A DNA stretch of 64,000 nt from Bispira polyomma (taxonomy: Eukaryota). Position numbers and translations under genes: made by a program. Where the stretch lies: NCBI GenBank assembly GCA_965649765.1, contig OZ287754.1, forward strand, positions 14,136,001 through 14,200,000, given 5' to 3'. Below the pieces are notes generated by a model that was not told the DNA's origin, did no database searches, and worked only from the letters and a program-made list of their open reading frames with translations. This document shows, piece by piece, positions 6,143-63,864 of this stretch. Position 1 is the stretch's first letter; each line of letters begins with the position of its first letter.

Positions 6143-6277
6143 GCATTCTGTTTTCCTGTGGATCCTGCCTGGGAGATCCTTGTGACAACCCTACAGACAT
6201 CTCTGATGAGCGTAGATCTGTGAGGTATCAGAGTTTAGATGGGAATTATTTATGTGACCATGGTATGATTCAGGAAG
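6143..6277 (+). CDS. Exon E1: probable end of signal peptide and start of D8C domain 1 (GILFSCGSCLGDPCDNPTDISDERRSVRYQSLDGNYLCDHGMIQEG)
   Basis: ttttctag acceptor, GAAG|gtatgt donor, 135 nt, phase 1-1; DPC..RS..CD pattern of uromodulin-like D8C. Confidence 0.85.
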
Positions 6278-7349
6278 GTATGTTATCATAGTCAAGACTA
6301 GTTGCTGGTTCTAGTTTTGTCCAGTGAAATTATGTGTCATCTTTGCTCTTAACAGACACTATTTTTATGGAAAGTCCCACTCACGGTTTATAGCAGAGCT
6401 TAGACTTACCTCACATGATGGCTACGTGCAAGTTTCTGCAAATAACCTATTCATATCAAAGTATTCATATCATAAGAATTCTGAGTGCTGAATTCAAATA
6501 TGCAGAGTATTATTATTAATATTTGACTAAACTGCACTGTAGAGAAATGTGTATATTAGAGTTTGAGTTTAGCTTAATATTTTTGTTTGGTGAATGGCCA
6601 GAACAACAATAAATCAGATATATGTCCACAACCAACATGCCCACATGTTTAAAACGAATAACACAATCCTGTGTACCGTTGTTTTTTTATAGGGCCTCAA
6701 TGATATCTCTTAAACAAATGAGGGTTAATAAGCCGATAGACCAAGTATTCTGCCGCTAATGACGGCTTTTTTGCATGATTATGCCAATGTGTATTGGCAT
6801 AATCATGTTATCCTGGAGTAGGAGGGAAGGGGTAGTGGAAGGCCAACAGTAACGTATGGCAACATCCTGTCAACAGGGTAATCTCTAAATCTGTCAGGAG
6901 TTGTGCTCTCATATTTGGAATATATACACTCTCTGGTCTCTAGTTAGTCCAAAATTAATTTGGCTTGACTATATGGAATATAGTATGAGTTATTTAAGTT
7001 TTATATATTGAGATGGTCAGATTTGATTGAAGGGTCATTTTCATACTAAACATCATGACTTGAATTTTAATTTGAATTAGTATTTTTAGCGTCCACTGTA
7101 GTACATGTTTAGGTTATATTGGGATGGGTAGTTGGAAACGCTGGAGGAAACACTGCATACAGTTGATCTAGGTTCTGCACCAAAACCAGAAAACCACAGT
7201 AAGGAACTACCACCTTTCCCACATAGGCATCGATGGGATTCGAAACTCACGCCGCCCAGAGGTGAGAGACCAGTGATTGTGAAGCGCAATGCTTGCTAAC
7301 CACAAGGCCAGCGCGGCCCCCACTAAACATCATAATATACATGGTATTC

Positions 7350-7383
<34 letters not shown>

Positions 7384-10300: not shown

Positions 10301-13300
10301 TGGTGACAGAGCGGCTACCATAAGCAAAACGTTGTAAATCAAAATCGGCATGTATAGAGATAGAATCCAGCTAAAAAACATTTCCTTATTCCTTATATAT
10401 GATATGGTAGCCGATTTTGTCTCATTTCATGCCAAAATGTGTACTCATTAATTAATATAAAATGAAAACTAAAACCACAAACATTGGCTCAAAAACTCTG
10501 TCAGCCATTTTACGTCAGACTATATTAAGAATGTTTTGGTAGCAGTATCTGTTCTGTCCCTTATCTTGTATTCCATCATCAAAATAACAGCAATGAATCT
10601 CGCTAAAAAGGGACAGATTATTCGGTTAAGAAGCTGGTAACTTCCCACTCATTGACTGTTATCATGTTGTTCATAAAGTCGTACATGGAAAAATGTATGA
10701 AGAAATTCGACAGTGGGATATACAATTACAAATAGTATGTCTCTGGATCTTGTGCCGTGTGGGCATAAATACCAGGCAACGAGATTGCATCTTGTTGTAG
10801 ATATGTATGATATTATCACCGGACTTCAACACAAATCTAGTTTGTGTTTTGGCATTCTACTAGGCGCACTAGTAATAATGCACAAATTACATCAACATTT
10901 TATTCTAAACTAAGATATGTCTTTTTTTTTTGTATATATATGTATACTATGTCTATGCAATGAATAAGTAATACCTTACTGACTGGTTATAGAGAAACAG
11001 TTTGATTCTGATGTATCATATTAATACTATATCATAATGTTATGGTTACTATCATAACGCCGTAATATACAAAGTCACAAATAAAATTTTGTTCATAATG
11101 CTCTCTTAATGACAAAGGCTTTTGAAGTGCATTAGGTTCATTGAGCTATATTAAACTTAAGACTACACATTTTTGTATAACATTCACAAATGCAAAAACT
11201 TTAACAACTATATTAGGCTTACCATTGACCCACTGTGGATTCACATTCATTTACAATTAAAGTATGCTTGTATTAAAAATATATGTAAACTGAACAACAG
11301 TCAGATGGTGCAGCCAAATAACTATTTTTTTAAGGTGGGAGACACATATATGTATACATATAGTGATATAGATGTACTTATTGCTCTTATATTCCTGCAC
11401 AGATTCATATTGGGTTGTTGTTTTTCATACTTATTTTTTTCTGTTTTCTTTTTCTTTGATTTGTTCAGATATTTAAATTTGCTGAGTGGATTATGATTTT
11501 TTTTACAATAATTTTATGATACAAAAAGGGTTTGTAAGCCGGGTGTACTTTTTCAGTCATAATGTACACTTTTATGTCATATCACATATTGGCTGTGAAA
11601 GATAAAACATCATTTGGATTTCGTAATTAGCATATCGGTATTATAACCATGGTGTATATCAGGCAGTATAGTAGAGCATCAATTTACAGACATCAAATTT
11701 GTTCAGAGGGAATTGCTAGACATGAATTGCTGGACATTAGTAAATGCTAAGAATCCATTTGGTGATATGCACTAACAGGAAATAAACAACTATATTTAAT
11801 TCCATGAAAGTGGTGACATTTGGTGTCTATATAATAATATCACAAGGTAAGGTACATACTGTTTTAAAATAACCTTCATATCTATTTAGGAATGTCTACA
11901 GGGGAATAAATTAGCATCACTCACACAAATGAAGTAGTCATGTGGTATAGATGTTAACAAACTACATGTTTCATGCATGACCTTTGTGTATTCTTAAAAT
12001 TCATCATAATTATTTAATATCGAAAACAATGCTACCCCTCACCGTCGCTCTACCCCCCACCCCTGCCACATACAAACTCCTGGATCCACCTATGTGACTG
12101 CTCTTGTTTACAGGAAACTGGTACACATTTGACACACACACAGGTGGTAAAATGCCCGAGACATGTCCTGAATTTTATTCATGTGGAACACAAGCACCCA
12201 TTTGGTTCAACGATGTTCATCCCACAGGTATGCAAGAGTTTATGTTTAAAACTCCTTAAATTTACCCAAGACAAATCATATACAGTAAATCATATACAGT
12301 AAATTTACCATGATTGCAGGCATAAGAACACAAGTATTTCTACGCTTTCACGAGTGGTAAAATTCCTGTATATCGCTGGTTTGGAATGGGTTATTACTAT
12401 TCTAACATGACATATGAAAGTTAATCTTGAATTTTTAAGAATAAAATTATGTTACTGGAGGAATTACTTAACAAAGTGGAAGAAATTGATTAATTCATTG
12501 GGGTTTAATGTCGCTTTCAACACATTCTATAGGTCATATCACAAAAGGCAGCTTTACTGATGAGTAAAAACAGTACATACTAGTTGGTCAAGATTCTGCA
12601 TTGTAAACCAGCATCGGCAAGTAATTTCAACTTTCCCATATAAGGAATAGTGTGGAAGAATACAGTCTATGTTTTGTCCAAAATTTGACCATATTCTAAA
12701 CCAATCAGAATCAATGACACAAGCTCGGTATATAAAATTCATGTTTCAACTCATTTTTTTCTATTATCCTTTTATGATTAATTATTTTATTGTATTACAC
12801 AGTCACTGTGCATAATTATCCCTGGTTTCATTCAAGATCTCGCATACATAATCTACCACACAAAAAAGAGACAAATCCGTTCTAAAGCTTGTTTAGTAAC
12901 AAACCTTACCTTAAAGTCCCTCAAGATCTACTTTGCTATAACTCATTTTTCTACAAGTTAATTCATAACCAGATACCATTGATGTAATCACTGATCAACA
13001 TAATGTAAAATAAATTGTATGTGGTATTCTTTACTTGTTCAATGGTTTTTAGTGAATCCTTTGTAAAAAAAATAACTTTACTTTTTAGCATTGCAATGGC
13101 AAAAGAGCTGTTGTAGTATATTATATATCTTGAATGCACTTTATTGATGTAAGGCATCTTCTCAAGCACAACAATCGAATCAATCAACCAACCATGTGTC
13201 CTACAACATAGCTTGGGTCATCTTCAGTAAGCAATGGCTTGTTCATATGTTACCAAATGATACAATCCCAATACACCTAGTGGCATCAGCAGGGAACGAA

Positions 13301-16300
13301 TCCGGAACCTTCTGATCACCATACCCATGCCCCTACTGGCATTTAAACCGGGAACCTCTTGATTACCAGACCAACTCCTTAATTCCACTAGGCCATGGGA
13401 GAACACAAAAAAACTTAAATGATATTCTACTTATATATGTTACAGTTAATCTGTGAAACCAGTCATTACGCGTAATGACTGAAACCACTAGTCATTACGT
13501 GTAATGACTGAAATTTGTGATTAATTTTTACACAGATTCACTAATTAGTAATATGAGATTTCAGTCAATCTGTGTAATGGTGTTAGTGATAGTTTTATGT
13601 GATAAGATGTAGGAAGTAAATATGGTATGACATATAAATATTTTAATGCCAAAAGTCTCTTTGTGTAACTGTTTTGCAGCAGCAGCAGGTGGACTTAAAT
13701 TCTATGAAGCATTGTTAAAATTCATAAATTTCATGCATTATAAGTGTCTTGGGTGGGATTGATTTGTGTAACTTACCATTATTTCATGCATTGTAAGTAT
13801 CTCAAGCAGGGTTTTATATTGTGTGAATAACAAAATACAATTGGGAAATATTTTATAATTTATCCTCTAAATGGGAATGGGTTCACATGTGACTTCTATG
13901 ATTTTAAAAAGTCCATGTTCTTTGATGTTTTATGTTGTTATTTGAAAGCAAATTTCAAAAAAGAACAAAAGTAGCTGATGGATACTATGAAGTTAAGCTT
14001 GTCCACTGGTATTGCTTCAAGTGCAATCCAGCATAATCCTTCTTTTGTAGTTGACTTATTTGTGTTGCTACCTGTGTGAGGGTTTAATTTAGTTTAGTTA
14101 TCTTTATGCAACTACTTCACAGTGTGAAAGCCTTAGTAGAGATTTAGTTGAGCTCCAACTTAACCCTGAGTATCACTTTTAAATGCAACTGTGCTAGAAA
14201 TATAATAATGTGAATTCAACAGATGCAAGCGCTTTATAAACCAAATTAAATGCTTCAGTAATTGTCATAGCAGCATCTCGTGTAAAAATATATGGATAGA
14301 TAGAAAAAAAATTTTTATTATTATTCTGACATGGTGTGATACATATGTACATATATACAGAAGTTTTATTAATTATCAACACTCAGCTTTAAGGTTTGTA
14401 AGTTAGTTTAAATATGATATACCAATTCAATGTGTGTACAAAAAATCCTTACAAATTTTGATTTCCTATATTTCCACAACTTACACAAACATTTTGCCAA
14501 TATTTTAATATGTTTATCTTTGAGTGACATAAAATGAATGGATATTTACAAAATATAGAGTACATGTAGAAATAAACACTCAAGGGGAAACTAATGGAAT
14601 TAACCATGGTTATCTTTAGTCTTTATAATTTATATTTTGAATATGTGCTGATAGAGAGCAATAAATGTGTGTTTACCCATATTTTATCAAATTATATGTT
14701 TTATACTTTATTGTATGTCTATGTTAGTGTGTAATAAACATCAGCTTGTTTGTCTTCAAATGTTCCATTTCCTATTGAACATAATGATATATGGCAATAT
14801 GGCAAGAAAAAGGCAAACACGTACTACCAAGAAGATGAACTATTAAAAATACTTAAATTGACAGTAAAAATTTCATTTGAAAAATATGTGATCATGATAC
14901 ATTATATTATTGGTCTGCTCAATGTAGTTTCAATCATTACTCTTAATGACTGGACCATATTTTCAGTCATTATCAGTCAATTATGACTAAATTTTAGTCA
15001 TTATGTGTAATGACTAGTAGTTTCAGGTATTACTCGAAATGACTGAAAGTTTCTGTCATTGAGCGTAATGACTGGTTTCACAGATTGACTGTAACATATA
15101 TACATATATAAATATATTGATGTTGTTTATGACTTGTACTGCTAGACTCTGAAGTTCACGATGCCACAGTATGTGTAAACATCAACAGTTGTTGTGAGAT
15201 TGCATATGACATTCAAGTCAAGAAGTGTCCAGATGAAAAGTATATCTACAGATTGGCAGAGCCTGTTGCTTGTGATTTAGCATACTGTGCAGGTTCTGGG
15301 CTACCTTGTGAACCTGGAAAAGTTTGGGTGGAATCACTTGAAAAGTGTTCTGGTGTGGATTGGTTTATATTTATTTATTTATTTATGCATATGGAGTATT
15401 GGTTGTCTTATCAATTATTTTAAATGCATGTATATTTCTAAAGGCATAGTCCAGATTGCATAAAGTAAACACTCCCCAAAAAAGTGAAAACATATTTTAA
15501 ATTTGCAATCAAACAATTTTAATCGTCAATAAAATAATCTTAATCGACAAAAATTAATTGATTCTAGAATTCAAACTACAATATTTTTGGAAGCATTGTA
15601 ACTGTATCGTTTTAACTTCAAAACATATTTTTACCACTGTCAGATGGCTATCCTGTGATGTCTGGTCCCCCACATTTATCTGATCCTATTGCTCCAGATG
15701 ACCTATTTCGAGGAACATTTCAATTTAGATGTACAATCAATTACTCAGATAATGACGGTAGAGCCATGTTTGAAGTGTACTGGTATTTTGACAATGAAGA
15801 GGTACAAGTGCTGATTTAACATTTTCTTGTTTGAAATTATACTTCCAAATTACATATTAAACAGGCGTCAATCTTTAAGTCTAATAAGTACTGGTATTCT
15901 GTTTTTAGTCTTGTTACAAATGAGCCAAGGACACAAAGCTTTCACTACAACATTTTAGATTTTCACCATGTAACTACAATCTCCACTTATGGAGAATATC
16001 TAAAATAGCTAGATACAATCGAACATTTTTATTTTGAATGTCAAAATGTCTATCTTCTATGGAAAAAGATCAATAAATGAATAAGCCAATTATTTAAAGT
16101 TCACATTGACCTGACCATTTTAGAAATACTATTAGATATGAACAAAGTATGATATTTTTGACATTATCAATTTTCTTATTTTACATGTTATATGGAATAT
16201 ATATATATGTATTTTTAGAAAAAGCAGGTTACCATTACATATTATAGTTTTCTGTTTTTAAAAGATAGAATAAAAATCGAGTTGTATCTGATGCACATTA

Positions 16301-19300
16301 GTAATATTGCAAAACATAATAAAGTTAACATATTCAATTGATTGGAAAATTAGTATGTATGTTGCAAGGTCAATATGTAATTCTTTATCTACGTTTGTAT
16401 CCACAATTTGTTTAGTGACATATATATCTATGTTAAAACATAGTAGAAGTATTTAATTCATAAAAAAATGCATACCTTTGTTATAGAAAGTTGTAATGCA
16501 GTGTCGGACTATAAAAATTTAAATCTTTTTTTCGAAAACCATGTCTGTAAAACATTGAAACAAATTCTAATAACTAGATTACCTTCAAGTCATTGAAGTA
16601 TACCTTCAATGAATGATAAACATTTTACAAAAAATGTGGTATTACTATAAGCTTCAGTTAGTATCGAAAATTAGGTATGGTACAAGCCACTGGCTAAATT
16701 ACAGATTAAGGTAATAAAAATTTTAATAAAAACATTTGCTTAATATTATAATTTTACACTCTGTTGGTTGCCTATATTTTAAAATACTCAAAATTTAAAC
16801 ATGTTTAAAGCTATATGACTCATAAATAATAGTGAAAAAGAGATAACCTATGATAAAGGTCACACTTTATAAAAATTAAAAATACAAACTTGTATAATAT
16901 GAAAACTGAACATCAACAAATACATATAGTGTCACATAATACTAGCTAGTTCACCAATACTAGGTACAGCCCATGTTACAGCTACGTTATTAAATCTGAG
17001 ATAATTCTGAAGAGAGTATCCTAAAATTTACAGTAGAAATGAACAGTGGAGAACGAGGTTCTATGCCATTATGTCCTGGTCACACCTACACGTTCTAGAG
17101 CTTCGTTTGTGTCACGTTGTGTGAATTTAGGAAACGGTTTGAAACGTAGTAGGAAGTAAGGATCCTTTCTGTGATCGTTTCTTTACGTTTTCCGACGGAT
17201 AAAATCGTTCCCAAAACGTCTCCGTTTTGTCTTTTTTGTGTAGTGCTTCAAACTGTTTGAAACGCTACAGCCTCAGCTCCGTTTCTCCCCGTTTCTCTGT
17301 TCGTCCCCGAACGTTTCCGAAGGTAGCATAGATGTATCAGTGAGTAGCTATATGTAGTGGTAGGTAGCGAGGAAGTTCCAGTAAGTAGTGAGATCGTCTC
17401 CAGTCGTTGTATTTGTTTTACTAAGCAGCAGAACGAAGCAGAACGCACCAATAAGTAGCAGTACAGTAGCTACACCTAGTAGTAGGTAGTGATATTCTAC
17501 CAGTAAAGGGCCCGTTCTTTGCCCCTGCTCCTTGTGTATAAGTACCAACATCATCACGAAACGTCATGAAACGTCACAAAAACGTCACAATCAACTACCC
17601 CTTTATCTAAGTGACGTCACTTTGACACAGAACTTCCACGTTTTCAGTGTATATCAATTGGGTACGTTGAGAGACGTTAACAGGTGTAGGTGTGACCAGG
17701 TCATTACCAACGTTTTGGCTATGGGCATTATTACCACCGATCTGCTCATTTTTTTTGTTAAATGAAGTAATGCTGTGTACATATATATTCTGAGAACGAC
17801 CCCAGTTTTATCTAAATATGAGTAAGGATTGTTTTGTTTGTTTCTTTAAGTGCAAAGATTATCCATGTGTTTTAATCACTATATGTTTTAGGATCCGAAT
17901 GTTGGACCGGAACAAATTGATGGGACAGAAGCCTATCTTGATGAGCTGAAACTGGTTGGACATGTTGGGAAAACGGTATTTCATTGTCTTCACAAGTTGT
18001 ATGTTGTCCTGGTGTAATGGGCTTGATGAAGTATATGAACTCACTTTTCAATTATTAATTTTTTTCCTCCATTTTAGCAATATTTTTTTCCTAAGGATCA
18101 GATATATTAAAAACGCTTGTGTTACTTTAGTAGCAAAACAACCATGGAACAAAGCTGACAACATATCTTTGTCTATTTTTTAAAACAGTAATCACCAAAT
18201 AGTGCTTCAATTTTCTAAAAAAGTTTGCTTGATTTATATGTATATATATAGATATATACAGTTACTGTATATTTTCTAGTTTGGTCTATAGTTTGAGCAT
18301 TTAACATGTTTTCTCTTCTAGTTAGCCTAGTTGACCTGGCACAGTCATAAAAGTAAAAAATTGGACATGGCGGTATCACAGTCTCGTGCCACCCCTTAAA
18401 CACCTTTACATATTATTATGTTCAATGGTATTACCAAGTATACCAATCTGTAGGATTCTAGTCTAGTAGCTCAGGTTATATTTACTAGTTGTGTGGATAT
18501 GTCTTTCTATTATACAATAACTATAGCTGTATGATTGTGTTATAACAGGTTGCATTATTGTACCATTTATAGTTGCAGTTTCAAGTGCCTTCACAATTAC
18601 AATTATTAGGCAACTAAAAATCTAAAAACATTGCTTTAATTCTATCTTGACAACATTCTTGGGATTAAATCTTGTCAAACTTATTTTGTTGAAAGAAACA
18701 GTAATTACCATCAACACAATATAAAATACAGGACACTGCATTGTAAAAGCCTATTTTTACTGATGCCATACTTAAATTGATGTTTAAATTCATTGAAACC
18801 ATTTTCCTAATTTGATTGATTGTTATACCTTCTTATTTATGCCTTTTTGCGATAGATTCAGTATGAGACATGTTAAGGTGTTAAGCATGTAGTTACTGTT
18901 AACATGATGGTGCTTCTTTGAAGGTTTCGTGTGGTGCTAGGAGTTATTGGCCAGACCATCCAAATACACCAAGTGACACACTAATTAGTGACAATGGATA
19001 CTGGGTTGGGATTAAGGTACATTATGGACACGTTCTATTTCTTTTATCCATTGCCATCAATAATAAATCCGTATATAATGTAAGTGGTAGAGAAAACTAA
19101 AAGGGCATATAGTAGAGCGTACACCTTTAGTCAAAGAATACTGTGCTAAAGTGCTTCTGACAATCGAAGTTACATGAAAAAGAAAGGCATTTTGGAATAA
19201 AGTATACTTAAATTGATATAATTTGGAGAGGGTTGAAAGCTGTTCATCAAATTCAATATTTGATTGTACTGTACTTATGGCAAACGTAACCAACCAACAA

Positions 19301-52300: not shown

Positions 52301-55300
52301 AATAATTCCATGTGTTTCTAGGTACTTATTACTAATGACCAGAGAATGGGGCACTGTAAGTCAGTCACAGATCCACACATTAAATCATTTGACAGAATGT
52401 CGAATAATCTACCTTACTATCATCTGTTTCAACCAGGAAAATATAAACTTGTCATTAGTACGTCACCAAGAGTGCTAGAGGTATGTTAAAATGCATATTG
52501 ATATACATATGTTCTGCCTATCCCAGTTCATTGATTTTACATTAAATTTCTTATAGTATTGCTTTATTGAAAGTTTAAATTATGGATGTATAAATAATAA
52601 TTATGAACTTTTGTTTGTTTGGATGGTATTAATATTATTATAGTAAACAGATAGAGTTACAAACTGATACGCACTTTTGACAACTATAGAACAAAATAAC
52701 TTGGCAATGTTAATATACAGAAAACTCAATTTTAGAATGGTACTAGTTGCGTAGCAACTATGGTGACTTATGGATGCCCTTACTTTTCAAACACAAATTT
52801 AATAGTTCCACGACAATATTGCAATTATCGAGTTTATTAATGGCAGATAAAGTAGTTCACTATTTAAATAAAATACACAATGTGACATAAGCAATTTCAT
52901 CTTTAATAATGAAGAAATTACCATTATTATTGAGGGGGACCATAATTAAGCATCCCGTAAGGGCGTTTGTTTGTATATAGGAGGTAAATTTACGCATTTT
53001 CGGTCATACGACTTATTTGATTGGTCGAAATGTAATGACACTATATTGAAAATTTGCCCAAGGTCTACTGGATACATGTGCCAAATTTGAAAAGAATCCT
53101 TCCAGTGGTTGCTGAGTTACAGCCAATTCAAAATGTGTGACTAAAAAAATTTCCCTTGTTTTGTATACAGGAGATAGCTCCCGCATTTTCTATTGGCTAT
53201 AGCTCAGCAACCACTGGGCCGATTCTCTTCAAATTTGGCACATGTATGCAGTAGCCCTGGAAAAAAAATTTAAATATAGTGTCATTACATTTCGACCAAT
53301 CAGAGAAGTCACATGACCCAAAACACGTTTTTTAAAGGGGTATGCTTGTCCGGATGATAACTTCAGAAGCGCCTTACCTATTCTCACGAAATTTGACAAG
53401 TAGGTGTCTTATATAGATGTCCGGAACTAGATAACTCTGATAAGTGATCCGATACAAAATAGCCGACTTATTAACGATTAATTAAACGTTACGATTTTTC
53501 GAAACAAAGAAAATGAAAAATCCTTAATATCTCAGAAATGGTGCGAGATAGAGCGATTTCGGCTGAATTTTGGGCCTAGAGGGTATACTCAGTATTCTCA
53601 AAACTCAGCAACTTGGCAAAAAATTCAAAAATTAAATTTTTTTAAAAAAGTCAAAATTTAAAAAATTTTAAAAAAGTCCTCAATCTCAACAGAGGAAATG
53701 AAAAATCCTTAATACCTCAGAAACGGTGAGAGATAGACTGATTTGGGCTGAATTTTGGGCCCACAGGGTATAAAAATTTTTTAAAAACATTAAAATTTTC
53801 AAAATTTTGCAAAAGTCCTCAATCTCAACAAAGGAAATAAAAAATCCTTATTATCTCAGAAACGGTGAGAGATAGAGTGATTTCGGCTGAATTTTGGGCC
53901 CACAGGGTATAAAAAATTTTTAAAAATGTTAAAATATTTAAAATTTTGCAAAAGTCTTCAATCTCAACAAAGGAAATGAAAAATTCTTAATATCTCAGAA
54001 ACGGTGAGTGATTTCGGCTGAATTTTGGGCCCACAGGGTATAAAATTTTTTTAAAAATGTTAAAATATTTAAAATTTTGCAAAAGTCTTCAATCTCAACA
54101 AAGGAAATGAAAAATCCTTAATATCTCGGAAACGGGGAGAGATAGAGTGATTTCGGCTGAATTTTAGGCCTAAAGGGTATAAAAAAATTTTAAAAATGTT
54201 AAAATATTCAAAATTTTGCAAAAGTCTTCAATCTCAGCAAAGGAAATGAAAAGTCCTTAATATCTCAGAAACGGTGAGAAATTTTGACATTTTCAAAATG
54301 TTTTTTTAAAAACTTGAAATTTTTTTTTTTTAATTTTTTAAAAAATCGCTCTCTCTCCATTTTTGGCCGCCAACTTGAATTTCTGCGTTTATCTCGGAAA
54401 CGGTGCCAGATAGAGCAATTTCGGCAGAATTTTGGGCTCGGAGGGTATATGCAGAAAATTGCTCAATGTCTTATTCGGACGCTTTGTTTTTGCTCTGCAA
54501 AAACAATTTCCTTTCATTTGCAAAGCAGTACTCTAGTTTTGTTTGGTCCATAATTGTTAGCCACATAGTATAAGTTTAGAATTATCTAAGGTGACAAATC
54601 AGAACATTTTGCTTACATTGCCGTGAGTTTTCAATATTTTATTGCTTTATTTGGTTGATTGTTTAATATTTAGATATTTTTAAACATAATAGTTACATAC
54701 TATAAGTGTATTCTGAACATAGAACGACTCCAGTAGCATGTATGATTTATTTATAACTCAAGAAGACAAAAATAGTTGGCTCATGTTGTAAGGTTTTGTA
54801 TTTTTTCTTGATATAATTTAATCCTACAGTGCACTCTTGTGGTTTATACTGCTATATATATATATATACATATATAAAATGTCACAATCTTTTGAGGATC
54901 ATGTTTATTTTTACATGCAATTTTGTAGATCCATTCTGTTTTACGGCCATGTGAACTGAATCCTAATGTGGCATGTAACTGTGGAGTGGCAATCCGAGAA
55001 GGCAACCTACTCCTTGGAGTTGATAACTGTAATGGTCCATTCAGGACCTTCAAGAAAACTCTTGTGAACGAAATATTGACTGATGGAACCTTAGCTACAA
55101 ACACAGCTGGCACAGCATTTACAGTATGGTTTATTGTTTTGTATTTCAGTATTTTTCAAGTAACCATAATATGATAATTGTCTTTTTAAAAATACAAATC
55201 CACACAGTATTTATTTTTATTAGTCAGTTAGGCGTTACCAGCAGATAATCATGCTGATTCAGTGTCTGCAACATTGTGTATACACCAGATCCCTTAGCAA

Positions 55301-58300: not shown

Positions 58301-61300
58301 TTAAGTTGAAGGTTGACCAGAGTAGACCAAGTTTTCTGTCCTCGACAGTGCTTTGATTAACTGACGGTACTCATGGAGAGGACTGAGTCGTTACTATAAC
58401 AAATACTTGTAAATCTGACACAGTTGTTTGTTATGTTCTCTTTAACGGGAAATATACAGCAATATTTTCAAATAATGAGATTTAATTAATCAAGTACTTT
58501 TAGGTTGTCCATAAGTTATAATATTTTGTTAAATAAAAACATAAGCCTTATCCAGATGGTATAGTCAGTCTTATAGCTTGGCAGAGAATCCACCAATTAA
58601 ATTTGTTAAAATGCGAATATGTAAAAAACATAGAATCTGATATGAACTAGCAGTTAAGCCCCATATAAATCCATCCATATCACCGAAACTAAAATGAATG
58701 TTGAAAATAGTTATTTCTACTTTTACAACATTAGGGTTCAGTGTTATCCTTAAGGTATAGCATGATGTAAATAAAATCCAACATGTGGTCAGGTCAATAT
58801 CACCTAACTGATGTCGAACAATATTGACCATACCTCTGGGGTTATATTTCCTCATATGGCCTGTTTGAACAATTTATATTCTGTAAAAATACCAATATTA
58901 TTTTTCTTGATATCATGAAGTACTCTTGTTATGAATACACAGGACTTTACCGGCAGTTAAACTCCTGTTTGGGTGATACCTATTGTTAAAATCAGGTGCT
59001 TCTTTTTAAAGAATGTACTGTCTGCTTTCTGGGCCACATTATTGAATGACCTTGTTTAATAAATTACTCAGTTCAAGTTTACATCTGTACATCATATTCA
59101 GTAACTTTTAAATATATAATACATTTATTCATCAAAATTATGATATAAAATTATATTAACAGAAAATTGCATCGCCTTACCTTTATTTATAATTATAATG
59201 GGTGTATGTGTATTTAGAAATTCGAAATGACTAAAAAATACAGTTTGTTACCGTCGCGTTAGTTTTCAGCAGTTTAAGTCAGAGAATTGCCTCGAATCAG
59301 GTGTTTCTTTAAATTAATAGTCCTCGCCTTCGGCTCAGACCATTATCTTAAAGAAACACCTGATTCTTGGCTATTCTCCTACACATAATACTTCTTCACC
59401 AGTTTTGCATATCGATTTACCCACCTTGTTGAAATACTGATGTTAATTTTTTATGATAAGATTGTTTATTTGGTTTTATATTTGTCATATTTTATAATTA
59501 ATTTTAGAATATCTATACAATTTTTAACTTAACTACTTATTTTAGAGTATTATTTTACTAATTTCAGTACTTTTGAAGTTTGTACTGAAGTTTTGCTTTA
59601 ATCAGAGTGGGTAAAATAACTCTCTAACTGCACAACAACCCTTGGTCTGATTCATGTCAAGCTTTGGTAAAACTATAATGCCATTTATAATTGTCATTTT
59701 TAGATTGTAATGCCAAGTGGTGCCAAAGTTGTAGCCACAGAGGATAAACATTGGCACCTTAATGTTGATGTTTTTCTGCCAAGTGAATTCTACAATACTA
59801 CTTCTGGACTGTGTGGCATTTGGGATGGGGATGCCAGCAATGACTTTCAGCTACAATTTAGTAATGAAATAGTTTCCAGTTCCGAAAGTCTGCCCAAAGT
59901 GTTTACAGATTCTTTTAGGTAGCGACTAGTAGGGTTTCTTTTATCAAAGATTCGTATGCAGCAAGAGTGTTTGATAATGTTCTTCCCTGTTTTGTGGCCT
60001 TAGGATAGCATTATATATTTCAAAAATGTTAACCAATTAGTTCCTAATTAAGACTTGACAAACAATTTGCCACATTTTTTGCAATACATTCTAAAAAGTT
60101 TGTAAGGGCCTGATGTAGGAATATGCATATATATATATAGATATGTGTGCTACATTGTCATTAAGAAAGTACGTAGAGTAGCCAAAATAGAATAAATTAA
60201 AAGCAGTTCACGGACTGTAAAGTCAAGTATATTTAACTTACTAAGCAAAGTTCATTGCACTATAGAGAAGTAAATGCTATTTTGTAAAGCACAGTGGGTT
60301 GTTTCTACTTGATCTTTCATTATACTCGGATACATTTTTGGTTTATCATTGTGTTTCGATTCAATTGTTTACCTTACGTACCTTTTAGTATGGCCCTTGC
60401 AAGTAATAGTTTTTGACAGTACTCGCTGGATGTCAGAACAGTAGGAAGAAAGTAAGATGTCAGATGGTAAACAAATATCTGAAAAATCAAAGAAAGCTTT
60501 GAATTAATTTTATTCAACCCTTAAATTACCCTTAAATGATAAAACATCTTGTTGTTTTGAAAATGTAATGATCGTGACCCCTTTATTTTTGCTTCAATAC
60601 ACCATTTATTTGTTGAATGTAATAACGCTACTCAAAACCTTAACTATCTATTTTTGGGGCCCAATTTCATGAGAAACAGTAAAGCTAGGTCATCCATTCC
60701 AAGTTGTACTTTTTGTAGTTTTGCACTAATGTTCAATAATCTGAACTTTAATAATACCAGGATTAGCTCTGCCCATGCTTCCTGATATGAATATTTATTT
60801 TCATACTGTACTGCCCGTAGGTTTTTTTTTTTCATTTCTGTCTGTCCGTTTGTTATGTCACATATGAGATATATGACAGAATCAAAGGTCAGTTAATGCT
60901 TATTTTTGGTCTTGTATTATTATTATATACAAACTTTGTACTTGCATTGACAGTATTCAAATAGTGGATCATGTCAGCCTTATTACAACCAAAATGGCTG
61001 CCATAGTACTTTTCCTAATAAAGGGACAACAAGATTCAAACCCAATCTGGCAATCTTAAAAGTTATGCAGCCTAGCATTAGAAGTTTCTTTGTTTTACAA
61101 GATATGCATTACATAAGCTAAATATATATTACATGCTAATATGTTATAAATATGTGTTTACATCTCTGTTTGATCAAATATTTTAGCTTTTCTATTTTCT
61201 TTATATTTTAGTGTATGCATTATTTTGAAACATATATTCGGAAACCCACAATTTCCTATTATTTCTACTTTGATTGAAGTTTACTTAGTTAGGAAATAGA

Positions 61301-63864
61301 CACTGTTTCTGGAAATAGATAACCCAATCTAATCCGCCATAAGTATAACAGCTGAATGTATCTCCAAGTTATTTGTATAACAGTTTAACTTCATTCCAAA
61401 ATCACTGCAACAACCACATGGATCTCTGTCATAACTGTCTTGCTTCTTGGTTGTCAACACTAACTTTAGATTACATTTGTTTGAATCCAGAGATCAAAGT
61501 TTACATCAACAATATTTGCATTCTAGTGAGATAATATGTTTAGATTACATTCAAAATTTTCTCTGTTAAATTGTTGTTATAGAGGTTTATGCCTTGATTT
61601 TCCTAAATTAAACTGTACATTTGTACAAACCCTTTAAATGCAGAACTAATTTGCCATAATTACAAAGTAGCTATTTCGTATTATTTTAGAATTCCAAAAG
61701 GAGAAAGCTTTTTTGAAACAAACCCATGTGTGGAACTTCTTGATCCAGAAGCTTTCTATTACTGCGAATGTGTTCAAGGCGAGGTCAACTGTGTCAACAC
61801 TAGAACAATAACAGATGTTGCAATTGGTATTTTTTTTAAATGATTTAATTTGATGCTTTACAATACCACTAAGATGGGTAATTGTTTGAACTAATAGCAT
61901 CCATTTAAAGATAGCATTTTCTGACTTTATATATTTGTTTAATTTTTCAGAGGTTACAACTAAACATAGTGGCAGTTCTCTTACAACCACAATGTGCATG
62001 TTCAGCATATTGCCGGGTGACACATTACATGTCCATATACATTACATGTCCATATACTACGGATTTTATGAATGGAAAAAAAGAGTCTCGTAGTTCTTGG
62101 TTAATGAATGAAAGTCAGAGTTTTTGTCACTTTTGTGGAGTGCAGATTTAATATTGTTAAATGGAGTATTGAATGACGCATTTATATAGCTATATATGTC
62201 AAAAAACGTTGTTTTTGTCATTTAGGGGCACTCACTTTACTGTGCTATTTTCCAGGTAAAATCAACTGCAAAAGCTGCTTTTGCAATATAAAGTTATCTT
62301 ACAAACTAAGTATCAGTTTTCTATTAATAATAAAATGGATAACCTTTCAGCCAAAATGTCCAGAACTAGTTCAACTATTACCCAATAGTCACTCTTAAAA
62401 TCATTATAATTATATTTACAGATAATACATTTTCTAATGTTTGTGCCAGCAAGCGCAAAAGACAAGCAGATGACTTTAACCTGATATTTGCTGACCTGGC
62501 TGAAGAAGAGGAGGATACTCAACCAATGTCAGTATAAATACTTTGTACCATCTAACCAACTTATAATTTAAGAGATGCAAAACCAATTCCAGTATAAATA
62601 CATTCTACCTGCTAACCAACATATAATTTAAAAGATGCAAAACCAATGTCAGTATAAATACTTTGTACATTCTAATCAACTTATAATTTAAGATGTTCAA
62701 AACCCATGTAAGTATAAATGCATTGTATCTTGTTACCCATTTGGAACTGAAGAGATACAAAACGTGTGAAGAACAGGTGTAAGAGGTAGGAAGTACTTGT
62801 TTATGAAGTCTGCATACTTACATATGAGGAAGTTTAACTCTCTGATTTTTGATTCGGGAAGAACCATCAACCATGTGTTTTTCTCTTCTCATTCAAACAA
62901 AAGGTCAATATTAACGCACCACAGGGACCAGATGTTAAACATTAATATTATGTCATTTATGCTAAGGATTGTTTCTGTATTGTGTGATTTTACCTTTGAC
63001 ATACATATATTAAAATATGTACAGCAGTACACATTGACACTGATTAAGATTTTTTACCAGTAGATATAAAGACCAATATTTTAAAAAAATGTTGTATTTA
63101 ATAACTTTTTCTATCATCTGTATGTATGAAGAGATTTGGAACAAAATAATTCACAGTTGGATAACTTTGATAAAGGTTTTGCATTTGATGTTCTTACCTG
63201 TGGAATAATTTACCTCATGGCATCAGGAAGGTCATACCTTATATTCCTTTTGTCGCAGATTAAAAACATATTTCCTCCATATCTGTCTCCAAGTTACCAC
63301 TTGATCCTCTGTTGTTGACTTTTTTACATTGATTTTTGAATAGTGACTATCATTTAACCCAGAGCCTTTATTGTAATCAAAAACAATTGATAAATATTTG
63401 GATAATAATAAAAAGCGGGGTCTGAACTGAAATTCTTGTCTGAATTCTAAAAATTAAAGCATCTGAATGAAAGTTTATGTATAATAATTTTTTTGTTACT
63501 GTTATGTTCTGTCTTATTAAAGTCTAAAAAACATAAGTCACAAAATGTTAAAATTGACAATGGTATGTCCAGCTTATGGAAAGTACACAACAAAATGTAG
63601 GAGAGTACTTTTTCTATGCCTGATATACTTTGTTGATGACAGCTTGTATCTTATCCAGTCATATGTACTGCATTAAAATATCAACCATGTGTTTTATAAC
63701 ATTTCAGTGAGCTTACTTGGCCAACTCCGTCGGGTATTACTAAAGATGAAGCAATTGAAAAGTGCAATGCAGTTCTTCAAGAATCTCTTGCATATGATCT
63801 GTGCCAGAATGTTGTGACTGTAGACACTGAGGAAATAAAAAGCATCTGTAGATTAGATATACAG
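6143..63864 (+). CDS. VWDE: VWDE-like secreted protein gene with an internally duplicated ~914-aa module; 31 exons in window, partial at the 3' end and probably the 5' end
   Basis: 31 exons with AG/GT boundaries splice in one open frame. Motifs: D8C (DPC..RS..CD..GxWYxF..CGT..IW..HP..CC..C..YC), VWD start CxSVTDPHIKSFD and end TSGLCGTWDGDATNDF, WPTxSGIT..C, EGF CINQCSGHGLCNNGTCDC..GADCS. This order matches the VWDE family; the symbol denotes family likeness, not proven orthology. Exon n is paralogous to exon n+17. Confidence 0.88.
7057..7321 (-). mobile_element. tRNA-derived SINE, full length
   Basis: Reverse-complement copy of the 8003-8247 SINE with pol III A/B boxes; 12-bp TSD ACTAAACATCAT at 7045-7056 and 7322-7333. 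Confidence 0.85.
7352..7382. repeat. (TG)n microsatellite
   Basis: About 15 perfect TG units. Confidence 0.95.
7586..8759. mobile_element. MITE with TGTTACAGTGAATAT terminal inverted repeats, inserted in a TA run
   Basis: TGTTACAGTGAATAT...ATATTCACTGTAACA; subterminal GGGAATA..TATTCCC palindromes; flanked by (TA)n. Confidence 0.8.
8003..8247 (+). mobile_element. tRNA-derived SINE inserted inside a MITE
   Basis: A box TGGCCTTGTGG, B box GAGTTCGAATCC; imperfect TSD aattaat..tgtgtgaggg on both sides. Confidence 0.85.
9110..9635 (+). mobile_element. Helitron/Helentron-type non-autonomous element with about 3 internal ~145-bp tandem repeats (AAGATGGCCGCC motif)
   Basis: Units start near 9201, 9344, 9492; preceded by a ctgtccatccgtctatctgtcc microsatellite typical of such elements. 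Class assignment is inference. Confidence 0.6.
12114..12227 (+). CDS. Exon E2: D8C domain 1 (GNWYTFDTHTGGKMPETCPEFYSCGTQAPIWFNDVHPT)
   Basis: 114 nt, phase 1-1, canonical splice sites; same length as paralogous E19. Confidence 0.9.
12498..12650 (-). mobile_element. SINE fragment (3' part), related to the 7057/8003 family
   Basis: gggtttaatgtcgctttcaaca..cagtacatactagttggtcaagattctgca..actttcccata resembles the SINE core; similar fragments near 46430-46610 and 47300-47355. Confidence 0.5.
13438..15096. mobile_element. Non-autonomous DNA transposon with long TIRs (TGTTACAGT..), inserted in a TA run
   Basis: TGTTACAGTTAATCTGTGAAACCAGTCATTACGC at left, inverted at right; repeated palindrome CAGTCATTACGCGTAATGACTG; TATA flanks. 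Confidence 0.85.
15146..15352 (+). CDS. Exon E3: end of D8C domain 1 (..VCVNINSCCEIAYDIQVKKCPDEKYIYRLAEPVACDLAYCAGSGLPCEPG..)
   Basis: 207 nt, phase 1-1; Cys pattern shared with E20. Confidence 0.88.
15644..15801 (+). CDS. Exon E4: Ig-like region (YPVMSGPPHLSDP..FQFRCTINYSD..FEVYWYFDNEE)
   Basis: 158 nt; paralog E21 has the same length and 44/53 identical aa. Confidence 0.9.
17072..17703. mobile_element. PIF/Harbinger-type MITE
   Basis: TIR TGTCCTGGTCACACCTACAC / GTGTAGGTGTGACCAGGTCA; TTA target-site duplication at 17069-17071 and 17704-17706. Confidence 0.85.
17892..17975 (+). CDS. Exon E5 (DPNVGPEQIDGTEAYLDELKLVGHVGKT)
   Basis: 84 nt, phase 0-0; paralog E22. Confidence 0.9.
18924..19016 (+). 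CDS. Exon E6 (VSCGARSYWPDHPNTPSDTLISDNGYWVGIK)
   Basis: 93 nt, phase 0-0; paralog E23. Confidence 0.9.
19491..19624 (+). CDS. Exon E7 (VPAEVNLTESKADTTIELESTVPITCGCCRKTDTQDGFKDQTEC)
   Basis: 134 nt, phase 0-2, gtaagt donor; paralog E24 differs at only 4 nt. Confidence 0.9.
20974..21040 (+). ncRNA. Type I hammerhead ribozyme motif, probably from a Penelope-like element or retrozyme
   Basis: Stem I ACAGCCT/AGGCAGT; core CTGATGA 20981-20987; stem II GAATACC-cata-GGAGTTC; GAAA 21006-21009; stem III TATATTAA-ccaata-TTAATATA; AUA cleavage triplet 21031-21033. Confidence 0.75.
22345..23117. mobile_element. hAT-type MITE
   Basis: TIR CAGGGTCGGGG / CCCCAACCCTG; perfect 8-bp TSD GTGTGTAC (22337-22344, 23118-23125); subterminal GTAATAG repeats. 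Confidence 0.88.
25742..25958 (+). CDS. Exon E8 (FEIKMNSAPKISNVPSNCIAIF..IWKDYNIGPSK)
   Basis: 217 nt, phase 2-0; overlaps ORF 25755-25982; paralog E25. Confidence 0.88.
26780..26938 (+). CDS. Exon E9: VWD domain start (GLCESVTDPHIKSFD..)
   Basis: 159 nt; TDPH motif as in VWDE-type VWD domains; paralog E26. Confidence 0.92.
27752..27946 (+). CDS. Exon E10: VWD domain (VACNCGVAIREGN..)
   Basis: 195 nt, phase 0-0; paralog E27. Confidence 0.92.
28021..28721 (-). mobile_element. Solo LTR (probably Gypsy-type)
   Basis: TGTTAC...GTAACA ends; near-TSD GTAG/ATAG; TATA (ggtatatataagg) and AATAAA on the minus strand; absent from the paralogous intron after E27. Confidence 0.7.
28800..29221 (-). mobile_element. 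Possible decayed tyrosine-recombinase (DIRS/Ngaro-like) fragment
   Basis: AFLEYLVQTDSSPYTINKYLAVIKHL resembles the N-terminal SAM-like helix region of YR retroelement recombinases; no catalytic motifs recognisable. Confidence 0.3.
29437..29651 (+). CDS. Exon E11: VWD domain end (MPSGAKV..TSGLCGTWDGDATNDF..FTDSFR)
   Basis: 215 nt, phase 0-2; classic VWD GLCG.WDG...NDF motif; paralog E28. Confidence 0.93.
30862..31004 (+). CDS. Exon E12 (IPKGQSFFETDPCVELLDPEAFHYCRCAGGTSKINCENTGTIEDDPI)
   Basis: 143 nt, phase 2-1; paralog E29. Confidence 0.9.
31165..31931. mobile_element. Harbinger-type MITE related to 17072-17703 (right end intact, left end degenerate)
   Basis: Ends GTGTGACCAGGGCA followed by TAA; CpG/AAACG-rich body. 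Confidence 0.55.
32679..35410 (+). mobile_element. Helitron/Helentron-type non-autonomous element interrupted by a BEL/Pao insertion
   Basis: 5' palindrome GTATCCACCGACTCGGTGGATAC; matching subterminal GTGGATAC 35367-35374; 3' hairpin GCATCGG-ttct-CCGATGC then CTAG; internal repeats (aaaagtgctta..ctataggaaatcatgggct) continue across the insertion. Confidence 0.72.
33290..35223 (+). mobile_element. BEL/Pao LTR retrotransposon, internally deleted; pseudogenised integrase and intact 3' LTR (34567-35223)
   Basis: Integrase motifs DYFGPF, FTC..TRAVHIEV, IWSDNGTNF, WTFNPPEASHMGGVWER, LTPNHLL with stops; both LTR starts TGTAACACCTAGTTTAAA; 5-bp TSD GCAAC (33285-33289, 35224-35228). Confidence 0.9.
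37273..37985 (-). mobile_element. 5'-truncated LINE (L2/CR1-like) ORF2 C-terminus, 3' UTR and tail
   Basis: ANAFVSSRLDYCNSLF..LQCIQNSAARIV..ITPVLKKLHWLPV; AATAAAAG followed by (ATTACA)n-type tail. Confidence 0.88.
38119..38224 (+). CDS. Exon E13: linker with KRKR basic site and acidic tract (DEYPNLCANKRKRQVDDFNLIFADLAEEEEDTQP)
   Basis: 106 nt, phase 1-2; paralog E30 has the same length. Confidence 0.88.
38650..39560 (-). mobile_element. Highly degenerate LINE remnant, partly shared with the paralogous intron (about 62800-63200)
   Basis: Minus-strand VANALVSSHLDYCNS at ~39040-39080; homologous text occurs in the E30-E31 intron. Confidence 0.55.
40099..40255 (+). CDS. Exon E14 (DLSWPTQSGITEEEAIEKCNDVLQESLAYDLC..ICRLDIQ)
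   Basis: 157 nt, phase 2-0; WPTxSGIT motif characteristic of VWDE-like proteins; paralog E31. Confidence 0.92.
41518..41725 (+). CDS. Exon E15: includes EGF-like start (CINQCSGHGLCNNGTCDC)
   Basis: 208 nt, phase 0-1; EGF Cys spacing. Confidence 0.9.
41946..42109 (+). CDS. Exon E16 (YLGADCSFRKGTAPTIKDVALGGICDTYLGTCHG..CRFTSIE)
   Basis: 164 nt, phase 1-0; completes the EGF (GADCS). Confidence 0.88.
42683..42916 (+). CDS. Exon E17 (..VFCQLP..YNLALSLDGEVFS..IFNSVCVDCTSDGFCTIK), IPT/TIG-like region
   Basis: 234 nt, phase 0-0; overlaps ORF 42671-42928. Confidence 0.88.
43831..43984 (+). CDS. Exon E18: junction exon, module-1 end (PDTCAIDGKCY) fused to D8C-2 start (C..RSAAYK..CDASHIEEG)
   Basis: 154 nt, phase 0-1; 3' half aligns with E1 (RS..Y..CD..I.EG) and uses the same donor position. 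Confidence 0.87.
45226..45339 (+). CDS. Exon E19: D8C domain 2 (GKWYRFNQYTGNEIPEQCISTGHCGTKNTIWLDGMHPT)
   Basis: 114 nt, phase 1-1; paralog of E2 (17/38 aa identical). Confidence 0.9.
46725..46952 (+). CDS. Exon E20: end of D8C domain 2 (TCANYYDEGCCDWSAPVTVKYC..YQLMPPPVCETAFCSGNIMPC..)
   Basis: 228 nt, phase 1-1; paralog of E3. Confidence 0.9.
47637..47794 (+). CDS. Exon E21 (paralog of E4)
   Basis: 158 nt; FPVMSGPPHLSDPIAPEDLF..WYFDNEE. Confidence 0.9.
48662..48745 (+). CDS. Exon E22 (paralog of E5)
   Basis: 84 nt; DPNVGPEQIDRTEAYLDELKLVGHVGKT. Confidence 0.9.
49309..49401 (+). CDS. Exon E23 (paralog of E6)
   Basis: 93 nt; VSCSAMSYWPDHQNTSSDTLMSDNGYWVGIK. Confidence 0.9.
50601..50734 (+). 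CDS. Exon E24 (paralog of E7)
   Basis: 134 nt, phase 0-2. Confidence 0.9.
50912..51134 (+). CDS. Exon E25 (paralog of E8, 2 codons longer)
   Basis: 223 nt, phase 2-0; overlaps ORF 50877-51158. Confidence 0.9.
51306..51600. repeat. Intronic tandem repeat, ~85-bp unit, about 3.4 copies
   Basis: acagatattgtcagcaaatgtcatacataggttta..gggtatagtttgcttg recurs near 51306, 51389, 51475, 51562. Confidence 0.85.
52322..52480 (+). CDS. Exon E26: VWD-2 start (GHCKSVTDPHIKSFD)
   Basis: 159 nt; paralog of E9. Confidence 0.92.
52925..54556. mobile_element. Inserted element (Helentron/HINE-like) with a long internal inverted repeat and a ~138-bp satellite array (about 53510-54280)
   Basis: Absent from the paralogous E9-E10 intron; unit aaaaatccttaatatctcagaaacggtgagagatagagtgatttcggctgaattttgggcccacagggtata.. 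repeated about 5-6 times. Confidence 0.7.
54929..55123 (+). CDS. Exon E27: VWD-2 (paralog of E10)
   Basis: 195 nt; VACNCGVAIREGN. Confidence 0.92.
55847..57570 (+). mobile_element. Young 5'-truncated LINE (L2/CR1-like) with near-intact RT, nested in an older LINE remnant (about 55270-55846 and 57571-57940)
   Basis: ORFs 55766-56638 and 56639-57214 are in the same frame, split by one TAG; LLDLSAAFDTIDH, GVPQGSVLGPILF, FYADDTQLY; (TAGAT)n tail; candidate TSD GATTGT. Confidence 0.92.
59282..59378. repeat. ~97-bp imperfect palindrome (probable transposon end)
   Basis: GAGAATTGCC..GAATCAGGTGTTTCTTTAA ... TTAAAGAAACACCTGATTC..GGCTATTCTC around a cgccttcggct loop. Confidence 0.75.
59704..59918 (+). 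CDS. Exon E28: VWD-2 end (paralog of E11)
   Basis: 215 nt; TSGLCGIWDGDASNDF. Confidence 0.93.
61690..61826 (+). CDS. Exon E29 (paralog of E12, 2 codons shorter)
   Basis: 137 nt, phase 2-1; IPKGESFFETNPCVELLDPEAFYYCEC. Confidence 0.9.
62422..62527 (+). CDS. Exon E30 (paralog of E13; CASKRKRQADDFNLIFADLAEEEEDTQP)
   Basis: 106 nt, phase 1-2. Confidence 0.88.
62521..62764. repeat. 60-bp minisatellite (4 copies) overlapping the E30 donor site; degenerate paralog at 38219-38560
   Basis: aaccaatgtcagtataaatac..aaccaactt..aagagatgcaa with an exact 60-nt period. Confidence 0.88.
63708..63864 (+). CDS. Exon E31 (paralog of E14; ELTWPTPSGITKDEAIEKC..); gene continues beyond window
   Basis: 157 nt, ends CAG|gtatcg with no stop codon. 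Confidence 0.92.

Follow-up and report, generated by a model that had tools for sequence, protein, structure and literature searches.

Probable in-frame tandem duplication within a two-body VWDE-like gene of Bispira polyomma

The exons of a VWDE-like gene recur along one strand within 64,000 nucleotides of the Bispira polyomma genome (hereafter the window: positions 14136001-14200000 of contig C7 in a 1.035-Gb assembly, G000), which raises the question whether they belong to one enlarged gene, to two neighbouring genes or to an error of assembly. The reading favoured here, with a probability of roughly 0.6, is that of one secreted VWDE-like gene (gene A) grown by in-frame tandem duplication within itself.

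Exons and repeat within the window

Self-comparison of the window, translated and nucleotide, gave a single colinear run of exon-sized matches pairing ~12.1-40.4 kb with 45.2-64 kb, all on the plus strand. Exons were placed at AG/GT sites found at homologous positions in both copies, with phases tracked. The resulting 31 canonical AG/GT exons (6143-63864) joined into 4880 nt, or 1626 codons, free of stops. This joined model was used for the frame check and for dN/dS alone, and search, family, fold and structure tools were run exon by exon. Each body opened with a putative Ig_VWDE-like region, after which came VWD, a linker, the 'WPT.SGIT' region, one teneurin/tenascin-type EGF and a Cys-rich tail, and was preceded by a D8C unit of one of two types (N-type or C-type, see below). 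The exons, in window coordinates, were as follows; gene B is a paralog outside the window.

6143..6277, + strand: E1, 135 nt; encodes the last part of the signal peptide and Cys 1 and 2 of the N-type D8C (placed on AG/GT sites and phase; no in-frame ATG; acceptor kept in gene B)
12114..12227, + strand: E2, 114 nt; N-type D8C part 1 (Pfam D8C_UMOD E=6.8e-6, 26.6 bits)
15146..15352, + strand: E3, 207 nt; N-type D8C part 2; phase-1 donor (Pfam D8C_UMOD E=1.4e-7, 32 bits against a cut-off of 27)
15644..15801, + strand: E4, 158 nt; opens body 1 and the duplicated unit; Ig_VWDE-like; 83% amino acid identity to E21
17892..17975, + strand: E5, 84 nt; body 1; 27/28 residues as in E22
18924..19016, + strand: E6, 93 nt; body 1; 26/31 residues as in E23
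19491..19624, + strand: E7, 134 nt; body 1; 42/44 residues as in E24
25742..25958, + strand: E8, 217 nt; body 1; 50/74 residues as in E25; the body 2 and gene B counterparts have 223 nt
26780..26938, + strand: E9, 159 nt; start of VWD with the motif C..TDPH..FD; 46/53 residues as in E26
27752..27946, + strand: E10, 195 nt; middle of VWD; 48/65 residues as in E27
29437..29651, + strand: E11, 215 nt; end of VWD (Pfam VWD E=6.1e-8, 33.6 bits against a cut-off of 22.9)
30862..31004, + strand: E12, 143 nt; Cys-rich linker 3' of VWD; 32/47 residues as in E29
38119..38224, + strand: E13, 106 nt; acidic linker; donor set between AAT and GTAAGT; 27/34 residues as in E30
40099..40255, + strand: E14, 157 nt; conserved 'WPT.SGIT' region, matched in every homolog module; 45/52 residues as in E31
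41518..41725, + strand: E15, 208 nt; tail, closing with the first half of a teneurin/tenascin-type EGF (Pfam EGF_Teneurin E=0.0022; copies after body 2 and in gene B)
41946..42109, + strand: E16, 164 nt; tail, second half of the EGF
42683..42916, + strand: E17, 234 nt; tail, last residues '...CTIK'; phase-0 donor; 234 nt in all three bodies
43831..43984, + strand: E18, the junction exon, 154 nt; phase-0 acceptor; codons 1-19 are tail ('PDTCAIDGKCY...'), the remainder starts the C-type D8C
45226..45339, + strand: E19, 114 nt; middle C-type D8C part 1 (Pfam D8C_UMOD E=4.2e-4)
46725..46952, + strand: E20, 228 nt; middle C-type D8C part 2; phase-1 donor, GTGTGT after G (Pfam D8C_UMOD E=0.006)
46953..47636, + strand: mosaic intron, 684 nt; holds the duplication joint (blastn)
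47637..47794, + strand: E21, 158 nt; opens body 2; no in-frame ATG in the upstream open frame
48662..48745, + strand: E22, 84 nt; body 2; splice sites shared with E5
49309..49401, + strand: E23, 93 nt; body 2; splice sites shared with E6
50601..50734, + strand: E24, 134 nt; body 2; splice sites shared with E7
50912..51134, + strand: E25, 223 nt; body 2; splice sites shared with E8
52322..52480, + strand: E26, 159 nt; start of body 2 VWD
54929..55123, + strand: E27, 195 nt; middle of body 2 VWD
59704..59918, + strand: E28, 215 nt; end of body 2 VWD
61690..61826, + strand: E29, 137 nt; body 2
62422..62527, + strand: E30, 106 nt; body 2
63708..63864, + strand: E31, 157 nt; body 2, final exon in the window

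The match of E4 alone to Pfam Ig_VWDE was weak (E=0.077, 13.4 bits against a cut-off of 28.1), the domain spanning several exons, and E9 was colinear with the VWD starts of homologs. The sequence-only reading had E2-E18 (17 exons, 2742 nt) recurring from E19 onward with matching phases and lengths, and this was confirmed: the total was exactly 2742 nt, and the paired exons (114/114, 207/228, 158/158, 84/84, 93/93, 134/134, 217/223, 159/159, 195/195, 215/215, 143/137, 106/106 and 157/157 nt) were of equal length or differed by a multiple of three, with phases identical throughout. Protein identity between copies was 68-96% in the body exons and just 31-43% in the two D8C exons. The joined frame passes between the copies without a stop, and neither a signal exon nor a conserved start codon was found there, in agreement with the same reading, which saw no stop, second signal peptide or gene break there. 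Its expectation that domain scans would return D8C, VWD and EGF twice was borne out for D8C, with Pfam D8C_UMOD found in both copies; for VWD, the exon-by-exon scans recognized the domain in E11.

That the copies are uncollapsed haplotypes or a false tandem join is scarcely credible, and a haplotype origin had been thought unlikely from the outset. Nothing beyond the general risk of repeat-rich assemblies speaks for it, whereas 19% of residues are not shared between the copies (dS 0.26), intron lengths diverge by kilobases, the transposons inserted in the introns are not the same, and the intron at the joint is a clean mosaic.

Much of the difference in intron length between copies was due to retroelement ORFs, which were present in introns of both bodies (55412-57410 on the plus strand, 37376-37981 on the minus strand and 33876-34529 on the plus strand) and comprised reverse-transcriptase ORFs and an integrase-like ORF. 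Intronic tandem arrays were located at 53634-54279 (period 139 nt), 9201-9629 (148 nt) and 51273-51597 (85 nt). A further array of 60-nt units (62521-62763, 4.1 copies) began inside E30 and repeated the E30 donor site, and body 1 carried a 72-nt array at the matching position after E13 (38278-38411); these two arrays could offer alternative donors. A hammerhead ribozyme candidate at 20974-21040 found no support in Rfam: no family reached its gathering score across the window, and a local Rfam search of 20800-21200 at E<=1 yielded nothing beyond a weak mir-3012 hit (20880-20940, minus strand).

As the acceptor of E1 is phase 1, an upstream exon with the ATG must exist. None was identified among the blocks conserved between the upstream regions of gene A and gene B. 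The sole such block within 10 kb was a tRNA-like SINE, a 3-kb block further upstream was conserved in all frames and hence not coding, and a sensitive short-word search for the first coding exon upstream gave no other candidate. The SINE family occurred upstream of gene A, upstream of gene B and between the two genes, with an inverted pair at 7089-7329 and 7980-8205 and another copy ~1.6 kb upstream of the window start.

Register of the repeat and the duplication joint

Gene A continued beyond the window. Exon peptides were mapped over 40 kb upstream and 220 kb downstream, and six more exons were found where the gene resumes, at C7:14201043-14204713 (window coordinates above 64000 are C7 positions minus 14136000):

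65043-65250, 65519-65682 and 65853-66086, + strand: the three tail exons of body 2 (peptide mapping)
66517-66670, + strand: second junction-type exon (peptide mapping)
67888-68001 and 68436-68663, + strand: the two last D8C exons (peptide mapping)

After the last D8C exon the frame stayed open for 16 codons and closed at 68711-68713 (stop; C7:14204713), 4.7 kb beyond the window, an end assigned from the reading frame alone. Gene A was thus laid out as D8C, body 1, D8C, body 2, D8C, with ~38 exons across ~63 kb and 6029 coding nt from E1 to the stop, that is, at least 2010 codons, counting one base from the missing first exon.

The suggestion that further modules might follow beyond the window was not upheld, since exactly two bodies were found, followed by a junction-type exon, a third D8C and the stop. 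No third body was present within 46 kb upstream and 220 kb downstream, gene B excepted, and whole-genome searches with E17, E18 and E11 returned three close copies of each and no more. Counting modules downstream, as had been proposed, therefore gave a sole other close copy genome-wide, the inverted single-body paralog. The frame of gene A closes after its last D8C, and a search there with body-type and related-species exons returned no EGF exon. Two candidate 3' exons were discarded, one at 72992-73162 (window coordinates, beyond the window) as a transposon ORF and one at 76575-76909, in a block common to the downstream flanks of both genes, as lacking an open frame.

Gene B lies inverted on the minus strand (C7:14288026-14341821), ~88 kb past the window end. 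It contained equivalents of all exons E1-E18 and two D8C exons, and so formed a single body with a D8C at each end; no body was found after its last D8C. The initial description of the locus as a whole protein repeated was right as to a real, in-frame repeat, and overstated in that this single-body relative has D8C at both ends.

The D8C units were of two old types. The N-type, encoded by E1-E3, was found in gene A and gene B. The C-type, encoded by the junction exon and two further exons, was found in three copies of 496 nt each, with 88-93% nucleotide identity among themselves. Per exon, C-type and N-type shared about a quarter to under half of their protein residues. The 'heads' of the two copies are divergent because E2/E3 and E19/E20 pair old N-type and C-type paralogs, outside the recent duplication. 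The repeat unit first proposed, E2-E18, was consequently shifted: the duplicated block was E4-E20 (2763 nt), comprising a body, the junction exon and the C-type D8C.

The mosaic intron upstream of E21 displayed the joint. By blastn, 46962-47123 resembled the flank 3' of the last D8C exon of gene B, 47179-47312 gene A's last D8C exon (its end and the adjoining flank), and 47364-47636 the last 118 nt of intron 3 (15526-15643), ahead of E4. This fusion of a 3' flank to intron 3 places a tandem-duplication joint at 47313-47363. The phase-1 donor after the C-type D8C reads GTGTGT in the middle copy, GTATGT in gene B and GTGAGT in a related species; it was gone from the last D8C of gene A through a ~225 nt deletion, so that the frame runs to the stop. 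The frame was preserved because the C-type donor is phase 1 at a position homologous to that of the N-type donor.

The history suggested by these features would start from an ancestral form, surviving in gene B, with a signal peptide, an N-type D8C, a body, the junction exon and a C-type D8C. In gene A, a segment would have been copied in tandem that began in intron 3, 118 nt ahead of E4, and extended a few hundred nt beyond the last D8C exon. The C-type D8C exon would then splice to the copy of E4 via the shared phase-1 donor, leaving the frame intact.

The last D8C exon of gene B (C7:14288026) kept a good phase-1 donor, and its unspliced frame held 70 codons more; the last D8C exon of the related species (L034:12498-12722) likewise kept a good phase-1 donor. 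Both genes may thus splice onward to 3' exons. In the related species, the last D8C is followed at 9.3 kb by a same-strand exon encoding three calcium-binding EGF repeats (L035:13300-13700) and at 15 kb by a TSP1 exon (L035:19388-19624); the two belong either to the 3' part of that gene or to an equinox-like neighbour. An exon-like match, 'ENE..FKEAIA...YC..HTEECC.AM', was shared between C7:14282235-14282366 (minus strand), 5.7 kb downstream of gene B, and L035:20764-21000, downstream of the related species' gene (50% over 44 aa), and suggests conserved synteny.

One gene or two

Each body with its junction exon comprised 806 codons and was stop-free in all three bodies. Pairwise comparisons gave the following values:

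Body 1 and body 2: dN/dS 0.37, dS 0.26
Body 1 and gene B: dN/dS 0.42, dS 0.17
Body 2 and gene B: dN/dS 0.34, dS 0.26

When the distances were split over three branches, body 2 showed a dN/dS of ~0.32 on its own branch. Body 1 and body 2 are both under purifying selection (dN/dS ~0.35), and all splice sites of the 17 exons of body 2 were intact. The three bodies were equidistant from the related species' copy (55-56% aa). Sites informative for the three possible trees, rooted with the related species, numbered 9, 5 and 2, weakly favouring a grouping of body 1 with gene B. The closeness of body 1 to gene B (dS 0.17) relative to body 2 (dS 0.26) argues against a simple recent duplication. Two histories would account for it: gene B arose later as an inverted copy of the first part of gene A, or sequence was exchanged between body 1 and gene B.

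An alternative is that the gene ends at the middle D8C, with body 2 a 5'-truncated duplicate, silent or a minor read-through product. Left unspliced, E20 reaches a stop 7 codons beyond its donor (46973), with an AATAAA ~150 nt further; this flank is homologous to the sequence 3' of the last D8C exon of gene B, which itself has no body after that D8C. We nevertheless consider an early end unlikely, as a silent copy this old should be broken, whereas the 17 exons of body 2 retain their splice sites and 806 stop-free codons at a dN/dS of ~0.32 and a dS of 0.26. Moreover, the donor at 46952 was retained in the middle D8C, and the truly terminal copy has lost its own. No start or signal exon for body 2 was found, there being no Met in the open frame upstream of E21; the sole short ATG...GT candidate in the 684-nt intron would yield 'MKES' and offers no hydrophobic leader. 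An open frame and a constrained body 2 without its own start make a two-body protein the best reading. The stop and AATAAA past E20 would also allow a one-body product like that of gene B, and one-body isoforms by block skipping are possible, in frame since the blocks share phases. A word search with E20 returned no protein of the present or a close species.

The junction between E17 and E18 bears on a second alternative, two tandem genes, of which the first would stop after E17 ('...CTIKVGV', 42926) and the second would start at an ATG at 43786 and encode D8C, body 2 and D8C, as in gene B. A stop does lie four codons beyond the E17 donor, and the in-frame ATG opens onto 'TVVLHIYALLFII', whose hydrophobic residues might serve as a signal peptide. 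That stretch, however, doubles as the pyrimidine tract of a good acceptor, and the ATG is unique to the first copy in gene A: gene B reads ATA at that position, and the copy following body 2 and that of the related species lack an equivalent. All copies nevertheless conserve the exon's first half as coding sequence, which requires splicing from the tail exon, and homologs have the same residues immediately after the tail. Two genes are a less likely arrangement than even an early end at the middle D8C.

Homologs of E18 were found after body 2 (82% aa), in gene B (90% aa) and on a contig of the related species (ENA ERZ22147071, ctg31213l, about 430-665 kb, loci L033-L035; 59% aa), where the homolog lies between the tail exon and two C-type D8C exons. 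The order from tail exon to junction exon was kept in all three copies of the present genome and in the related species. The AG acceptor was kept in all three copies of the present genome, and in the related species the translated stretch upstream of the E18 homolog ended as expected for a pyrimidine tract with a CAG acceptor. A junction exon welded as a chimera by the duplication was accordingly not borne out.

The colinearity extended to other proteins. The end of E17 aligned with residues 606-630 of a VWDE-like protein of Ptychodera flava (ending '...CTLK'), and 'CAIDGKCY' of E18 with its 'CEINGQCF', 3 residues after the E17 match ('CTLK-KFA-CEINGQCF'), which is the spacing predicted by an E17 to E18 splice. 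A Bulinus protein showed the same order of E17 then E18. This colinearity implies that the first half of E18 is a normal continuation of the tail and that E17 to E18 splicing is ancestral; E18 itself is an ancestral exon and not a product of the duplication.

One gene grown within itself remains the preferred reading. A single two-body mRNA is likely, and it would use both splices, from 42916 to 43831 and from 46952 to 47637.

Relatives and significance of the two-body architecture

Gene A displayed three features of the VWDE family, namely a D8C near the N-terminus, a VWD and colinear similarity to annotated VWDE and VWDE-like proteins; E9-E17 matched in order in the Ptychodera protein and in a fish VWDE. 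As in VWDE (PMC7390686), a D8C/D10C head, a putative Ig_VWDE-like region, VWD, 'WPTPSG' and EGF follow one another in the same order. VWDE, however, has one D8C, one VWD and a C-terminal EGF array, whereas gene A has three D8C, two VWD in one open frame and a single split EGF per body, with no C-terminal array found among the exons searched. Functional work on VWDE concerns vertebrate limb and fin regeneration only, and covers deuterostomes only (PMC7390686).

An exhaustive protein search with E11 placed giant multi-VWD proteins at the top of the list, with identity above 50% in two 70-aa fragments only. The proposal to look for multi-VWD homologs of VWDE was thereby rewarded, as predicted relatives with 2-5 bodies were found in molluscs and a nemertean: Argonauta hians (GAB1607640.1, GAB1607641.1), Bulinus truncatus (KAH9523928.1) and Tubulanus polymorphus (XP_074642559.1). 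In these lophotrochozoan proteins, all uncharacterised models with 30-40% identity to gene A, 2-5 copies of the body, with VWD, 'WPTPSG', EGF and the Cys-rich tail, follow the exon order of gene A within one predicted protein. No D8C match was obtained in the multi-body relatives scanned, whereas the linker between bodies in gene A is a D8C unit. The Tubulanus relative carries a Laminin_G_3 domain, and the Argonauta sequence looks LamG-like by eye only; gene A has no LamG-type domain between its bodies.

Within the present genome, distant paralogs of E17 (35-37% aa) were located on the minus strand at C10:26114726-26114950 and C7:68998054-68998308, the latter near D8C-like exons (C7:69006335, 69053548). 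These two probably belong to more conventional VWDE-like genes.

All five D8C units shared the count of 2+10 Cys with the decoy module of UMOD and GP2, a beta-hairpin with D10C (PMC8930769), and E20 gave a weak match to the D10C region of uromodulin (6tqk, E=0.0099). VWDE is listed among D10C proteins (Stsiapanava et al. 2022, PMC8930769). Gene A differs from UMOD and GP2 in having no ZP module. Tandem VWD in a large secreted protein is also seen in FCGBP, gel-forming mucins and VWF, and E11 matched the solved VWD domains of FCGBP, VWF and MUC2; in gene A, by contrast, no C8 or TIL was found after VWD, and the repeat unit and linking domains differ.

The product of gene A is probably a large, secreted, disulfide-rich protein, in which three putative D10C modules on a two-VWD scaffold might act as a multivalent binder or polymer in mucus or matrix. 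A bolder proposal, to which we give less than an even chance, is that of a lineage-specific protein of ~2000 residues, with three uromodulin/GP2-type D10C decoy modules alternating with two VWD assemblies under selection, that would be secreted to trap pathogens as a multivalent decoy or to form an adhesive polymer, occur in one- and two-body isoforms, and represent an undescribed VWDE subfamily (D8C, body, D8C).

The combination of D8C units with two bodies is new among VWDE-like proteins, and the mechanism is ordinary. Its biological weight is limited, as internal tandem duplication is common in such genes and multi-body relatives are already in databases. For annotation, the locus should neither be split into two genes nor be given a third module. 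What the locus offers is a clean, datable example of a large extracellular protein enlarged by copying a 17-exon block, a copy in frame only because two old D8C paralogs have equal exon phase, and it indicates that VWDE relatives outside vertebrates can bear D8C at both ends and between bodies.
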